Assembly: GCF_006345805.1 (NCBI RefSeq)
Contig: NC_042997.1
Location: 81,220,001-81,284,000, forward strand
Direction of reading: 5' to 3'
Source of the DNA: Octopus sinensis
Taxonomy: Eukaryota
Length of the DNA stretch: 64,000 bases
Under the pieces are notes generated by a model. It ran no database searches and had not been told where the DNA came from. It worked only from the letters and a program-made list of their open reading frames with translations. The first letter of the stretch is position 1, and every line of letters begins with the position of its first letter. This document shows positions 20,463 through 63,231 of the stretch, piece after piece. Both the position numbers and the translations under genes were made by a program.

Positions 20463-22576
20463 CGGGAAGCTTATGAAAATAAACAAAAGACGAAGGCAGG
20501 TGGAAGACAAACGAACAATTGTATTAGTATGGCGCTCAGGAAATATAAATAAAACAAGTCTTTAACGTTTCGAGCCTACGCTCTTCAACAGAAAGATACA
20601 CAGAGAGAGAAAAACACAGAAAGAAGGAGAGAAAAAAAATGCGTGCAGTAGCTAACGAATCAACATGGCGATCTGATTTCGGCCAGAGGTCAAAGATCAA
20701 ACATGAGACGCGAGAGCGAAATAAGGGGAGATAATAGGGTTGATAACGGGTTGAGGGACCAGCTAAAAGTGCGTGGGAGGGGTCTGGATGTGTGTATGTA
20801 TAGGGTTGGTGTATGTATAGTATGTATAAGGGTGTGTGTGTGTGTGTGTGTGTATGAGAGAGTATTAGTGCGTAAGATTGGTCTGGACGTGCGTATGTAT
20901 GGGGTTGGTGTATGTATTAGTATGTATTAGTATGTATTAGTACGTATTGGTATGTATAGGTATGTGGTGTGTGTGTGAGAGAGTATAAGTGCGTATGCGG
21001 GGTCTGGACGTGTGTATGTATAGGGTTGGTGTAAGTATTAGTATGTACTAGTATGTATTAGTACGTATTAGTATGTATTAGTTGGTGTGTGTATTAGTAT
21101 GGCACATCATATGTGATGTGATGTGTAAAGTCATGTGGTGTAGTGAGGAGAAGAGGGGGAGGGGGAGAAGAGGGGGGAGAAGGGGAGGGGAAGAAGAGGG
21201 GGAGAAGGGGGAAGAGGAGAGGATGGGGGAGAAGGAAGGGGTGGAGGGGGATGAAGGAGGAAAGAGGGAGAGGGGGAGAGAGGAGTGAGGGAGCAGAGGG
21301 AAGGGGAAGAGGGAGGGAGAAGAGGGAAGAAGGGAAGGGGAGTAGGGGTGAAAGGATGAAGGACTGAAGAAGTAGGGGTCGGGGGGAGAAAGGATAGGTG
21401 AGGAGGGGGGAGAGGGGGGTTAGATGAGGAGGGGGGGAGAGTTGAGACCAAATGGCGTATAAGAGCGAAGAGAGAAGATTAATTCCTGTTCACGGCGCAA
21501 ACGGGAATCCGGATGGCCTCTGTGTAAGGACAAACCGAACACAGATAGGTGTTGCAAGGAGTGACCGGTGGAACGGAAATGGCGTGAGACCGGTGTGTCG
21601 TTCGCAAGGTGGATGTCACGAAGGTGTTCCGCGAACCGGTCAGCCAAGCGGCGTCCCGTTTGTCCGATGTACAAGGAATTGCAGAGAGAGCAAGAGATGC
21701 AATAGATAATATTGCTGGAGGTGCAGGTGAAGGAGTGGATGATGGGATAGGGTCGATGGTGGGTGCTAGTGAGGCGGGTGGTGTTGGAGAGGTAAGGGCA
21801 AGTGCGGCAACGTGGGCGGGAGCAGGGGAACGAGCCGGGTTGGGAGGTAGGGTCAGGGAAGGAGCTATGGACCAAAAGGTCTCGAAGGTTGTGGGCTCGT
21901 TTGAAGAGGGGGAGGGGTCGGTTAGGGAAGAGGTGTGAAGTGGACGGGTCGGACTGGAGATGACGGAAAGCTCGAAGAATGGTGCGTTGGAGACGTAGGG
22001 TCGTGGGGTGGTAAGTGAGGGGAAAAGGGAGGCGGGAGACTACAGGGCGGTTCGGGGAGAGAGAGCAGATACACGATCCACGGACCGTGCTCTGGCAAGG
22101 GCGGTGTGGATAGTGGTGAGGGGGTATCCACGTAGGGTGAAGTGGTGAGCCATACGTTGAGACTGAGTCTCAAAGTCATGGTCGTCACTACAGAGCCTAC
22201 GTAGACGGAGGAATTGGGAATAGGGGATGGAAAGCTTGGTGTGTTCTGGGTGGGAGGAAGAGAAGTTGAGGTATGAGTGTGAGTCTGTGTGTTTGTAGTG
22301 AATGGAGGTGGTAAGAGTGGAAGTGAAGAATGCTAACCGAAATGTCGAGGAAGGAGACAGAGGTGTTGGAGATAGTGGAAGTGAAGTGGAGGGCTGGATG
22401 GAAAGATTGGACGAAAGAGAGGAAGGAATCTAGATGTTCGCGGGAGAGTGAGGTGGCACCGATAATGTCGTCAATATAACGACCATATAGTTCAGGAGTG
22501 GGACCAGTGAAATTAGAGAATATTTGGGCCTCAACATAGCCAACGAACAGGTTCGCATAGTTGGGGCCCATTCGCG

Positions 22577-56435: not shown

Positions 56436-59272
56436 CTGTAGAAGAGTATCATGCTAAAATGCAAAGCAGAGACTTTGCAGCCAAGAACAGGATCCTACCT
56501 TTACAGACAAATAAGCCTGGCAGTTGTAGAAGGAAACAGCTAAGCACATATTGAAAAAGCAGTTAACATGAAAAAATCTGCAGAGCAGTGGTCACACTGG
56601 GATATAACGAGTGGCTACCTACTAAGCAAAAACTGCCTGAAGTTTTTTTTTTATAAAATAAAAATGTGATTGTAAGATCATATCTAAAAGCAGAGAGCTT
56701 CAAATGTAATGCAAACACGAAACAGTAATGCCAAAATTATGTAGAAAATATCAAAAACCAGTCAACTGGTTTCAATACGAGGCCAGAATATCTAAGTAAA
56801 GCCTGTAGGAAAAAGAAAAACCTAGATATGCTTTTAGAATCTCCAAACCTTAAGTGAGTTTCAATAATTCCCATAATTTCACATTGACTGTATGGACACA
56901 AATGTTGATTACACTTACTTTTACACAACTAAGACTGAAAACTAACAAAACATTTAAAAAAAAGAAGAACCTTTTTATTTCTGCCATAATACAGCAATTA
57001 GCTGAAACGAAGAAACACTAAAAGACCATTACCTTTATTACCTCCAGTGCTTCAAGTGTTCATCAAGCCTGAACAGCAAGGGAATAAATCAGTGTCAACA
57101 TCCCCAAGATTTGCTAGTGCTTAACAAGTAGCAACATTGCTTAAAATATTACTATTAAGTTGACAAATGGTGGCTTACTTTCATATGAAAATGTGTGTAA
57201 AGAAAGTATAACTGTTCTTTAAAACATTAAGCAATCAATGGAAATAAATTCTATTTGCACATACAATTGAAAGATTTGACAACAAATCACTTTAGGCCAT
57301 TTGAAACTTCACACACAATACAGAACATTTCAACTTATAATAAAGCTTACAAAGCTGTGTCTAATATATGGTTACTGAATACTTGAGCTTACAACATTAA
57401 TTTATAAATAACTGTTGTAACTTAGAATCCAAAATGACCGCTATAGTATACACTGCATGATGCAGAGAAACACCACTACTTACCTTCTTTCTTAAATTTG
57501 ATTGTTAATTTTCAAACAGATTTTCCTATCAAAGCCAAATCATCTTCAATGACATTGTACATTTTCCATTTGAGAAATATTCAGCAGGACAGTAATTTCA
57601 ATTTAAACTTTTCAGCCAACTTCAGTATTTTATGGTAAGCTTTCTAGCGGAGGTGTTTGAAGTATGAACCTCCAAGTTAAAAGACATTGCTTCTAACAAA
57701 TCCAATTCAAAGCAAGTTTCCAGCAGATTAGTGTAACTCAAGATTATAAATATCAACTATCAATCTCAAATTTAGTTGAGTCAAGTCAACATTCAGCAAA
57801 CAACCTATTTTATGTCTAGATTGCCAAGATTTAGAGTTAATCAAAGAACTGGGTATATATATATGTCTATGTATATATATACACTAAACAGAAATTTCAT
57901 ATTTATACTGACCAATTTTCACTTCTATGTAGAATTTGCCCCATTCAAAAATTTATGTACTTCTTTGATAAGCTTCATTAGAGTATGTAAATTAAGTACT
58001 GCCATCTCCTTCATTCTTAACATAACAGTCAGCTTTGTATCCAAAGTGTCGTGATATGTAATGTAATGAGGTGATGTTCTGTTCACAAGGAGAAAGACAG
58101 CTCTAAGGAGTGGCAACAATAGTGATGGGTCTTCGTTAACAAATAGTTCTTCATCATTAAGTTTCATACTTGCTGCTGCAAAAAGATCACAGGCAATATA
58201 ATTCGAATGTGATAAAAAAAAATTGTCTTGGCTCTTACTGAGTTAAATTTTGAGCTGAAGTTATTGTGGGAGTAAAATTTTAGATTGAAATAGAAAATGT
58301 AATGTGCTCAAATCTAAAGTTAGATCTTGTCTTTTGTAATGAAGAAATGACTAAATATAAGGCAACAAATTACCTTAATTTTAGATGGTTATTATCTTTA
58401 TCTTTAACGTATAATGTTTGACAAATTATGAAAAGAAAACAAGTCTTGCCCTAAACAAGCAAACAAGTAACCATATAAAAGCAGAAATTAAAAAAAAAAA
58501 AAAATTGAAGTTTCAGTGCTATTATAGTAAGAAAGTTTTCACCTTAAGATGCATCACTTTCATTTCAAGCAATATTGCCAAGTTCACTCATCTATTATAT
58601 TCCATTTCATGTAAGGCACACACCCATTTCCACTATAATTCTCTGTAATGGGAGGTAAATCCATACGCAAAGAACAAAACCTACAGAACCTAACGTTTTC
58701 TCTTCTCAACTAAGGATCCAGTCGAAATTTTACTAGAGCAGGGAATACTAATAGATCAACTGTTTCCAATTTGGCCAATCTAATTTTGCAAGTGTCAATG
58801 TCAAATTGGTGTGAATAATAACCACCAGATCCTTTTAATAAGTTTATTAAAACCAGAAAGTATTACACAGTCTTGCTAAACAGCAAAACCACAGGTTTTC
58901 TCAGCTTAAAAGAACTATGAAGTTAAGAAAAAAGACAAAATTTCAGTGAACTTGAAAAGAGTAAAAAAAAAAAAAGAAAAAGTGCCCATATCTATAATAT
59001 TTGAATTAAGAACTGATAAGTTAAAAGAATGGGAATGTTTTTAAATTTACAGAAATGGTACCACCACACCTCAATGTAACTTACATCTGATAAAGACCCC
59101 AGAAACTTTTTTTATAAAATGAAGGTGATATAACATTATAAAGTTTAAAAGCCTAAATTTAGAAATTAGCAACTTGTGTTTTAACAAAACAAGACAAGCA
59201 AGAATATCCTATGTCAGTTCAGTCTAAAATAGTCAGCAGTCAGCTAAATCAAAATTGGAATAAAAATGTTAC

Positions 59273-59556
59273 CCATCTGCTCGATTCCAAGCGATCTTCT
59301 GGCTTCTTTACACAGCTAAAGACTTCTATCTTGGCATATCAAACCCATTTTCTCATTCCCACTTCTTAATTCACCAACTCATTATCTTCAAATTTTTTTT
59401 ATTATTTTATAAATTATTTTTCTCATTTTTCTTAGCTTCCATGATTTTCATTCAGCCTATTCAGATTTTTCTTCTCAGTTCATTCTTTCTTCACGTTCAA
59501 TCCCCTGATTTCAGAGTTCTTTCTTCACCAGCCCATTTCATTTCTTTCTTCATAAC
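59273..59556 (-). promoter_or_regulatory. candidate AGAA-rich alternative (poison-type) exon / Tra2-binding enhancer
   Basis: ttcttgtattgtataaag|GTTATG...AGATGG|gtaaca. Contains three exact TGAAGAAAGAA copies within 59483-59552 and an in-frame TGA after RYEERNEMGW. Confidence 0.55.
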
Positions 59557-59880
59557 CTTTATACAATACAAGAATAAGTAACATTAATTTTTGGGGACAA
59601 AAAGTCTGCAGTCTACTTTTTTTTTTTTAACTCTTCATTTGATCCTGGCTTCATAAAACAACAAAAAATGCTATAGATTAAGACACTCCCATTGATCTTT
59701 ATTGAAAGTTGTTAACAGTATAGCAGGGAAATAGACAGCACAAAAAAGAACTACAGCTACATATTTGGTTCTGGCTATAGAGGGAAAGATATGATAAATT
59801 GTGGAAGATGCATTTCTGCCTTAGAATTGCTCGGAATTTCCTCACAGGCACAAATATTGACTACACCATAATTATGTACA

Positions 59881-59886
59881 TTTATT
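59881..59886 (-). promoter_or_regulatory. candidate polyadenylation signal AATAAA in the tra2 3' UTR (second copy at 59698-59703)
   Basis: TTTATT on + strand about 47 nt after the stop codon. The hexamer is common in AT-rich DNA, so this is position-based only. Confidence 0.35.
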
Positions 59887-59932
59887 GAAGAGCTGCTTTT
59901 TACTGTAGGCTCATCGCATAGGACAAAACATC

Positions 59933-59943
59933 TCAATAGTGAC
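59933..59943 (-). CDS. tra2: transformer-2 homolog, probable terminal coding exon (R-H-Y-stop)
   Basis: Strong acceptor ttctctttgtttccctttttcctcag|GTCACTATTGA. Phase-1 C + GT CAC TAT TGA = RHY*, matching the vertebrate Tra2 ending SPRRY*, which is also encoded by a tiny last coding segment. Intron 59944-63142. Confidence 0.85.
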
Positions 59944-60166: not shown

Positions 60167-60219
<53 letters not shown>

Positions 60220-63142: not shown

Positions 63143-63231
63143 GGGGAGAAAATGATCTGGAACGGGACCTAGAGTAACGACTTCCACTGCGTCGATAGTA
63201 AGGAGATGGAGAACGTTTACCTCTGCCTTCT
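63143..63231 (-). CDS. tra2: transformer-2 homolog, RS2-domain exon, 89 nt, phase 2/1
   Basis: atgtttcag|AGAAGGC...TCTCCCC|gtaagt gives (S)EGRGKRSPSPYYRRSGSRYSRSRSRSFSP in frame with the previous exon. RSPSPYY and RSRSRSxSP are Tra2 C-terminal motifs. Confidence 0.95.

Follow-up and report, generated by a model that had tools for sequence, protein, structure and literature searches.

The tra2 locus and its two 3' ends

The stretch of Octopus sinensis chromosome 1 analyzed here (64,000 nt, hereafter the window) carries on its minus strand the 3' half of the transformer-2 gene (tra2), and our subject is a GAA-rich alternative exon of 284 nt located past the canonical tra2 stop codon. The identity of the gene was evident from its translated exons, which code for a single RRM (RNP1 RGFAFVYF, RNP2 CLGVFGLS), a linker and both an N-terminal and a C-terminal RS domain. 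The translation is an exact match to RefSeq XP_029643803 (X1, 304 aa) and XP_029643804 (X2, 297 aa), named 'transformer-2 protein homolog alpha'. The exons of the gene are as follows, with a slash marking splice junctions here and below.

76489-76364 (extended coordinates, outside the window), minus strand: tra2 exon 1, from RNA-seq contig mapping
70604-70361 (extended coordinates, outside the window), minus strand: tra2 exon 2, from RNA-seq contig mapping
63857-63797 and 63461-63346, minus strand: the two RRM exons, in the window
63143..63231, minus strand: RS2-domain exon, ending ...EGRGKRSPSPYYRRSGSRYSRSRSRSFSP plus the first base of an Arg codon, phase 1 after ...SFSP; from the sequence, from contig L006 (see below), which maps to 63231-63141 and then to 59943, and from a translation that fits XP_029643803/4
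59675..59943, minus strand: canonical terminal exon, coding for (R)HY and the stop; L006 matches at 100% identity over 59943-59726, and RefSeq X2 and O. vulgaris X3 end in RHY
59273..59556, minus strand: GAA-rich alternative exon, 284 nt; acceptor used in the RefSeq X1/X3/X5, O. bimaculoides and Argonauta models

The donor of the RS2 exon (CCC C/gtaagt, 63143) is the common upstream donor of two alternative 3' ends. In the canonical form it is joined to 59943, and the reading frame closes at a stop at 59935-59933, followed by AATAAA hexamers at 59886-59881 and 59703-59698 and then by a U/GU-rich stretch. The Logan RNA-seq contig L006 (SRR16213284) holds a complete coding sequence ending in RHY and the stop, and runs colinear with the genome from 59943 to 59726, after which it continues in adapter. 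This colinearity rules out, for the assembled transcript, mini-exon forms of the canonical exon with donors at 59904 or 59843. We infer the 3' end of the exon, near 59675, from conservation and not from mapping, as a dip in identity between octopods (59650-59576) coincides with the stretch after the AATAAA at 59703-59698 and the U-rich tract.

In the other form the RS2 donor is joined to 59556. The RefSeq O. sinensis models X1, X3 and X5 end in ...SPRYEERNEMGW (...SRSFSPRYEERNEMGW), which corresponds to a 63143>59556 junction, and the same RYEERNEMGW ending is present in O. bimaculoides RefSeq XP_014774693 and in an Argonauta hians model. X2, an O. vulgaris model (X3) and L006 end in ...SPRHY via 59943. 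Since some tra2 mRNA models thus carry the GAA-rich exon while others use the canonical one, both 3' choices exist. The evidence for inclusion of the 59556 exon in octopus consists of gene models, and the Argonauta model may be a homology transfer and not an independent observation. The exon is already annotated, and so it is not newly found here.

A GAA-rich exon with weak splice sites

The alternative exon codes only for (R)YEERNEMGW and a stop, and its other 252 nt are non-coding and purine-rich. It starts at 59556 after the acceptor ...tattgtataaag/GTTATG (ttcttgtattgtataaag/GTTATG), 377 nt past the RHY stop, whose end is 59933. Its last base, 59273, is followed by a donor-like site (GATGG/GTAACA), and the stop at 59527-59525, which is the TGA of the second copy of an 11-nt repeat, TGAAGAAAGAA, is found 252 nt before this site. 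An earlier sequence-only reading of the window had predicted these two splice sites, the length of 284 nt and the 377-nt spacing, as well as the frame from the RS2 exon with a stop about 250 nt before the donor. All of this agrees with the minus-strand sequence, and for 59556 the RefSeq X1/X3/X5, O. bimaculoides and Argonauta models identify the proposed acceptor as a genuine splice site. The features in and around the exon are the following.

59557..59674, minus strand: spacer between the canonical poly(A) region and the GAA-rich exon, with the weak acceptor region ttacttattcttgtattgtataaag; lowest conservation within the block
59542..59552, minus strand: TGAAGAAAGAA copy 1, holding the GAAGAAAGAA start at exon offset 5
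59517..59527, minus strand: TGAAGAAAGAA copy 2, with the alternative-frame stop (TGA 59527-59525)
59483..59493, minus strand: TGAAGAAAGAA copy 3
59398..59403, minus strand: AATAAA inside the exon, in an A-rich stretch; Argonauta has AATAAA in the corresponding A-rich stretch
59226..59272, minus strand: weak donor GTAACA with a conserved flank, 47 nt; 93.6% identity to Argonauta, no alignment from 59225
58820..58950, minus strand: putative downstream terminal exon and distal poly(A) region, boundaries inferred from a conserved island, acceptor candidates and hexamers

The three exact TGAAGAAAGAA copies, which the sequence-only reading had listed at these same positions and together with GAGAAGAAAA, compare with a mean of 0.13 in shuffles of the window, and at least three copies were reached in 0 of 100 shuffles; GAGAAGAAAA is likewise within the exon. 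With 30 GAA and 15 AGAA per 284 nt, against a window mean of 5.0 GAA (sd 3.4), the exon is the densest place on both strands of the 64 kb. Assuming that the octopus RRM retains GAA specificity, we compared the exon in silico with the top-30 6-mers from crosslinking and immunoprecipitation (CLIP) of mouse Tra2beta (Table S1 of PMC3240583). These 6-mers cover 39% of the exon, as compared to 4.3% (sd 4.9%) of the minus-strand background and 35% of the mouse Tra2a poison exon (306 nt). The earlier view of the exon as a purine-rich array of Tra2-type GAA sites is supported both by the GAA density and by this coverage, and the array is flanked by weak splice sites.

The acceptor of the GAA-rich exon (ttacttattcttgtattgtataaag) is 68% pyrimidine with an A at -3, whereas the strong canonical acceptor (tctctttgtttccctttttcctcag/GT) is 95% pyrimidine and ends in CAG. 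The donor GTAACA (59272-59267) scores below the GTAAGT of the constitutive tra2 donors. Further downstream, pyrimidine-rich acceptors define candidate exon starts at 58950, 58914 or 58904, followed by AATAAA at 58848-58843 and ATTAAA at 58839-58834, and the T-tract plus AG of this distal region is also present in O. bimaculoides and Argonauta. The internal AATAAA of the exon may be a poly(A) site or an oligo-dT mispriming site.

Other identities for the block were considered and rejected. The donor region showed no significant RNA fold as compared with shuffles (z = +0.8), a 7-bp stem bracketing the donor is not kept in Argonauta, and the exon had no Rfam match at E <= 1, which speaks against a structured RNA. 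A transposable element or repeat family was dismissed as the exon matches only itself in the 2.7 Gb genome and is single-copy within the sensitivity of the search. Coding on the opposite strand was also discarded, since the 105-codon antisense frame, F/L-rich, only mirrors the purine tract and had no relatives in a homology search.

Two minor features were noted along the way. The stretch from GTAACA to TTTTAG at the donor flank is 49 nt long. On the plus strand of the window, a purine-rich tract at ~21100-21500 has a purine fraction of up to 0.93 and 22 GAA per 284 nt, with a Tra2 CLIP 6-mer coverage equal to that of the GAA-rich exon, and looks like simple low complexity.

Conservation of the non-coding 3' region in octopods

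We aligned 1.8 kb with O. bimaculoides and with the far more distant Argonauta hians. Identities to Argonauta changed along the region as follows.

Intron background: 20-55%, effectively unaligned
About 59990 to about 59780: 96-100%
59780 to about 59650: 82-94%
Dip at 59650-59576: 66-70%
GAA-rich exon, in 50-nt windows: 84-98%
47 nt past the donor, to 59226: 93.6%
From 59225: about 20-35%
Second island at 58875-58801, around AATAAA 58848-58843: 71-82%, amid unalignable sequence

By BLAST, identity to Argonauta is 92.8% for the GAA-rich exon and 94.2% for the canonical terminal exon, which is nearly all 3' untranslated region (UTR), as compared to 93.2%, 89.7% and 85.4% for three coding exons. 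The non-coding 3' region is accordingly at least as constrained as the coding sequence. This conservation goes beyond any coding need, as only 33 nt of the 284 nt are coding and the neighbouring 300 nt are unalignable. The spacer (59557..59674) reaches 79%, vs. 93-94% on either side. Taken together with the annotated acceptor, these data make it very probable that the exon is real and under selection.

The canonical 3' UTR also stands out in transcript comparisons. The canonical tra2 3' UTR (59650-59943) is 100% identical to L006 where the coding exons are 98-99% identical, and a transcript from a more distant cephalopod (contig L007) keeps GAGATG...AGCCTACAGTAAAA directly after the stop.

The same layout in other protostomes

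Protostome Tra2 proteins in the databases come in two versions, with either the canonical end ...SPR[RH]Y, as in vertebrates, or an odd tail after ...SPR. Among molluscs this tail is WEEERKMKIEN in a chiton, IEERKMKLLGNET in a limpet, FEERNMKCVKNET in an abalone and FEDRKMK... in an oyster; among chelicerates it is LEERNKG in Limulus, HMERRNL in spiders and AWKKE... in ticks; and in insects (bees, sawflies, thrips, cockroach, stick insect and damselfly) it follows the pattern [FYN](D)E[AS]RGIG. We therefore compared the loci of Haliotis asinina, Liolophura sinensis, Limulus polyphemus, Haemaphysalis longicornis and Apis mellifera, and in 5/5 of these the tail exon was found downstream of the canonical stop. 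A poly(A) hexamer precedes the tail-exon acceptor by 46-150 nt, the acceptor itself is AAG/G, and a high density of GAA/TGAAG extends over about 250-300 nt of the exon before it returns to background.

The canonical end is built in different ways. It is coded by a separate mini-exon in Haliotis and Apis (RRY and stop) and in Liolophura (RHY and stop), as is the canonical C-terminus of vertebrates, and by read-through of the RS2 donor in Limulus (RKYYY and stop) and in the tick (RRYGYY and stop). This difference between the chelicerates on one side and the molluscs and the bee on the other suggests that the last intron was remodelled while the downstream GAA exon stayed in place.

The start of the exon is also shared. 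In Octopus, Argonauta, Haliotis and Limulus the motif GAAGAAAGAA begins at exon offset 5, and in Liolophura it begins at offset 8. The tick version, GGAAGAAGGAACGAAG, falls in a different frame, giving AWKKE instead of xEER, and retention of the motif despite the change of frame points to selection on the RNA and not on the peptide. At the other end of the block, Limulus has the best donor of the region (GTAAGC, 8.0 bits) at 259 nt, and the candidate donors of molluscs are weaker and TGG/GTAAC-like, at 284 nt in Octopus, at 240 nt in Liolophura and, as TTGG/GTACGA, at 266 nt in Haliotis.

The complete arrangement of RS2 donor, canonical stop, hexamer, AAG/G acceptor and a GAA/TGAAG block of ~256-300 nt was found in Octopus, O. 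bimaculoides, Argonauta, Haliotis, Liolophura, Limulus, Haemaphysalis and Apis. The GAA exon is thus not a cephalopod innovation, as the layout occurs in molluscs, chelicerates and the bee. Whole-exon local alignments between phyla were mostly no better than dinucleotide shuffles, and the argument for a shared origin is therefore one of position and architecture and not of alignment; the exceptions were Haliotis-Liolophura (z = 4.9) and Octopus-Haliotis, in which the first 40 nt matched in register (z = 3.1). The sequence-only reading had pointed to alignment across cephalopods and other molluscs as a way to judge the block, and on this point the identity of 92.8% to Argonauta with unalignable flanks and the layout in other molluscs are both in its favour.

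Transcripts of the homologous exon were recovered in the tick, where nine Logan contigs carry the alternative tail. Three of the nine, from different runs, are spliced at GCG/GTAAGC, 256 nt into the exon. They continue in sequence that is absent from the 8 kb downstream and that has AAATAAA at its end, and about 200 nt separate the stop from the junction that follows it. In the tick, the donor that closes the block is thus used.

A model for Tra2 self-regulation and its alternatives

According to the model that we propose, the RS2 donor at 63143 would by default be joined to the strong acceptor at 59943, giving the RHY end and cleavage after the AATAAA at 59703. The alternative exon, ~120 nt beyond, has a poor acceptor (AAG/G with an interrupted pyrimidine tract) and a poor donor (GTAACA), between which ~15 (A)GAA sites are located, and it is this motif that RRMs of the Tra2 family bind. 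When abundant, Tra2 protein might assemble on this GAA array and define the weak exon. The RS2 donor would then skip the canonical exon together with its poly(A) site and join 59556, to produce ...RYEERNEMGW isoforms with a different 3' UTR. If the donor at 59273 is in turn spliced to the distal poly(A) exon (about 58950-58820), the stop would be found 252 nt upstream of an exon junction. A stop upstream of a junction is the classical configuration that elicits nonsense-mediated decay (NMD), and the alternative mRNA would then be less productive and exert a negative feedback on the Tra2 level.

Tra2-dependent exons are long and need arrays of binding sites (PMC3240583), and the weak splice sites, the length and the GAA array of the octopus exon fit this class as defined there. 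Judged from its sequence, the exon is fairly likely to respond to Tra2. That the outcome in octopus is an NMD-type down-regulation is possible and in our opinion doubtful. For the proposal as a whole, that Tra2 binds the array, switches the 3' end and yields a spliced form with an NMD-type junction, we consider the chances to be about even. An octopus transcript that enters the exon may receive its poly(A) tail at 59403-59398, may be spliced from 59273 to an exon starting at ~58950/58914/58904 and ending at the 58848 signal, or may read through to the 58848 signal. The sequence-only reading had called the exon a candidate Tra2 poison exon, and of this description the alternative inclusion, the site array and the constraint on nucleotides hold; the block is, on the other hand, already annotated as an alternative coding 3' exon and does not truncate the protein. 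Since RRM, RS1 and RS2 are all kept intact, a 'poison' effect could come only from the 3' UTR or from NMD.

Several observations weigh against feedback through this exon. The alternative mRNA still codes for a complete Tra2 protein, better-scoring GT sites occur downstream of the weak 59273 donor, and an AATAAA is present inside the exon. The sole assembled octopus contig, L006, uses the canonical exon, and searches of Logan contigs gave no octopus transcript in which the 59273 donor is used, nor one with the 63143>59556 junction outside the gene models. A Logan protein search with the C-terminal 92 residues including the alternative tail returned RHY-ending matches only, and an exact look-up of 10 open reading frames from four splice models returned nothing, with two of these models being uninformative because they were built on a guessed acceptor at 58908. 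To our knowledge, NMD that depends on the exon-junction complex has not been established in cephalopods. In the tick, six of the nine contigs run past the homologous donor into a long 3' UTR, and as the spliced forms were assembled in three runs they are not efficiently destroyed. In the honeybee four contigs carry the tail, three of which extend 554-672 nt straight on while the fourth stops 30 nt into the exon, and here the exon is terminal.

As a consequence of this read-through in the bee and in most tick contigs, a plain alternative last exon stays a serious rival, although on balance we find it rather unlikely. Polyadenylation would then occur at the internal AATAAA (59403) or at the distal signal (58848) with the 59273 donor unused, the product would be a functional Tra2 with a nine-residue tail, and the GAA array would be an ordinary enhancer for a weak acceptor, with neither feedback nor NMD. 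Possible poly(A) signals are located within the exon at 59403 and in the conserved island at 58848, and the bee and most tick transcripts use the homologue as a terminal exon. RefSeq lists the octopus isoforms with the GAA-rich exon as protein-coding, and the tails follow a loose pattern, which for molluscs and Limulus is R-[YFWIL]-E-E-R-x-M and for insects [FY]E[AS]RGIG. A short tail can, however, not explain why conservation reaches the level of coding sequence in the 252 nt that follow the stop and in the 47 nt beyond the donor. The tick, moreover, retains the motif in another frame. A plain last exon also leaves aside the donors that close the GAA block, one in Limulus (GTAAGC, 8.0 bits) and one in the tick that is demonstrably used, and a density of GAA sites that equals that of a validated Tra2 poison exon.

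The block could also be a 3'-UTR element of the canonical mRNA, which we regard as improbable. Transcripts from 59943 would pass the proximal poly(A) site and run to 58848, and the GAA block would bind Tra2 or other purine-binding proteins (with effects on stability, export, localisation or translation), or Tra2 would activate the 59273 donor as part of a 3'-UTR intron, the second route named in the sequence-only reading. This would be in line with conservation that is continuous from 59990 to 59226 with a partial dip only, with the unusual constraint on the canonical 3' UTR (100% to L006 vs. 98-99% in coding exons) and with the conserved distal poly(A) island, suitable for a long 3' UTR. Three octopod gene models nevertheless place an acceptor exactly at 59556, splice-site-like boundaries are found at both ends of the block in six lineages, and the poly(A) hexamer, the downstream U-rich tract and the conservation dip look like a real 3' end; no read-through transcript was seen, contig L006 stopping in adapter at 59726. 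Chance low-complexity purine sequence or a repeat remnant, with artefactual gene models, is very hard to uphold. AT-rich invertebrate genomes do hold many purine-rich tracts, such as the one at 21100-21500 on the plus strand with its similar 6-mer coverage, and the whole-exon alignments between phyla are mostly at shuffle level. This explanation is already contradicted by the single-copy nature of the exon, by its identity of 93% to Argonauta with unalignable flanks and by counterparts in molluscs, chelicerates and the bee that agree with it in position, boundaries and start motif, as well as by the transcripts of the homologous exon assembled in tick and bee.

Comparison with known self-regulated splicing factors

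The octopus exon resembles the poison exons of vertebrate TRA2A/TRA2B (Tra2b exon 2; Tra2a, 306 nt) in belonging to the orthologous gene, in its size of ~0.3 kb and in being alternatively included. Both are arrays of GAA/AGAA/TGAAGA sites (35% coverage in mouse Tra2a, 39% in octopus), have an early in-frame stop and are conserved at the nucleotide level without coding need. The sequence-only reading had noted the size of about 0.3 kb and a shared GTT start; the likeness extends to GTTA, at 284 vs. 306 nt. For the mouse Tra2a poison exon, binding of Tra2beta was seen in electrophoretic mobility shift assays, and minigenes showed that several sites are needed for activation (PMC3240583).

The two differ in position, as the vertebrate exon is located in intron 1 and stops translation before the RRM, whereas the octopus exon lies 377 nt past the canonical stop and leaves the open reading frame intact. 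Moreover, the octopus exon has two competitors, a splice site and a poly(A) site. For the vertebrate exon Tra2 dependence and NMD have been demonstrated, while the octopus exon is known here from sequence and gene models. A vertebrate-style poison exon in octopus intron 1 (extended coordinates 70605-76363) was excluded, as no GAA block was found on the sense strand of this intron. Local alignment of the Octopus exon with the mouse Tra2a exon gave z = 0.35 vs. dinucleotide shuffles, and the z = 3.8 for Haliotis vs. mouse Tra2a was an off-register match between repeats. Judged by sequence, the octopus exon is not a member of the vertebrate orthologous poison-exon family, and it might still work like one.

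Closest in form are the 3'-UTR events of SRSF2 (SC35) and SRSF1, because these also leave the protein intact. Autoregulation through the 3' UTR of these genes was reportedly described by Sureau and colleagues in 2001, Lareau and colleagues in 2007 and Sun and colleagues in 2010. As proposed for octopus tra2, the event takes place at or past the stop and creates a junction downstream of it, and the regulated 3' region equals or surpasses the coding sequence in conservation. The differences are that SRSF1 and SRSF2 are different gene family members and that splicing there splits the UTR, while the GAA-rich exon replaces the canonical last exon. In Drosophila, tra2 autoregulates via retention of the M1 intron in the male germline. 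This is similar to our proposal in that the product of the orthologous gene acts negatively on its own pre-mRNA; in Drosophila splicing is repressed near the 5' end, and in octopus an exon would be activated at the 3' end.

In the crayfish Cherax quadricarinatus, 3'-terminal tra-2 isoforms (CqTra-2A/B/C) and their expression have been described (PMC7363937), and they agree with the alternative tails of the insect, spider, tick and horseshoe-crab models. The passages searched in this descriptive study make no mention of a GAA array, a conserved layout or autoregulation. A comparative study of unproductive splicing in SR genes does not mention Tra2 (PMC4379411), and our literature search gave no description of a GAA-rich 3' exon or of autoregulation in an invertebrate tra2, although absence there is no proof. 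That the tail is the start of a conserved GAA array past the canonical poly(A) site, that this arrangement is spread over molluscs, chelicerates and insects, and that it may be autoregulatory, are thus apparently unreported, as none of this was found in the literature searched.

Splicing factors need to keep their own concentration within narrow limits, and vertebrates do so by ultraconserved poison exons, of which the Tra2b exon is such that its deletion leads to male infertility in mice (PMC11791180). An exon that keeps both its place and its weak splice sites across cephalopods, gastropods, chitons, horseshoe crabs, ticks and bees is a testable candidate for an ancient feedback device, and we regard the octopus exon as a strong but unproven candidate for an old self-regulation switch. 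More speculatively, and with rather low confidence, the post-stop GAA exon could date back more than 500 million years as the original module of Tra2 self-regulation in protostomes, with the vertebrate intron-1 exon and the Drosophila intron retention as later replacements. If so, Tra2 would have been kept in balance through unproductive processing that it activates itself for as long as bilaterians have existed, and the module could change its position but not its logic or its size (about 0.3 kb of GAA sites). On a more practical level, a conserved exon would account for the two C-terminal tails annotated in many invertebrate tra2 genes, and work on tra2 in sex determination (pest insects, ticks, farmed molluscs and crustaceans) should heed which isoform is measured or knocked down.

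Other observations at the locus

An intronless tra2-like copy is present outside the window (G000:C9068:43625-43975, minus strand). It holds a whole RRM with 63% amino acid identity in one piece and two in-frame stops (TGA and TAG). We take it for a probable processed pseudogene, and saw no other intact tra2 gene in the O. sinensis genome. The last tra2 intron contains a (TA)n microsatellite at 60172-60213, in a stretch that is absent from O. bimaculoides. In an older O. bimaculoides model (UniProt A0A0L8H7Q9) the RRM exon (63346) is joined straight to 59943, so that the RS2 exon is skipped and the canonical terminal exon (59775-59943) is read in another frame (...KPTSSLLRCFVLCDEP...), which could be an RS2-less isoform or an annotation artefact. 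The RS1 region, upstream of the window (extended coordinates 68617-69220), is also alternatively spliced, with X1, X3, X5, the O. bimaculoides model and L006 keeping different amounts of ...RSRSRRYCSRSRSRTPYSQRRRYSRSRSRSYSRGRYSPYYY....

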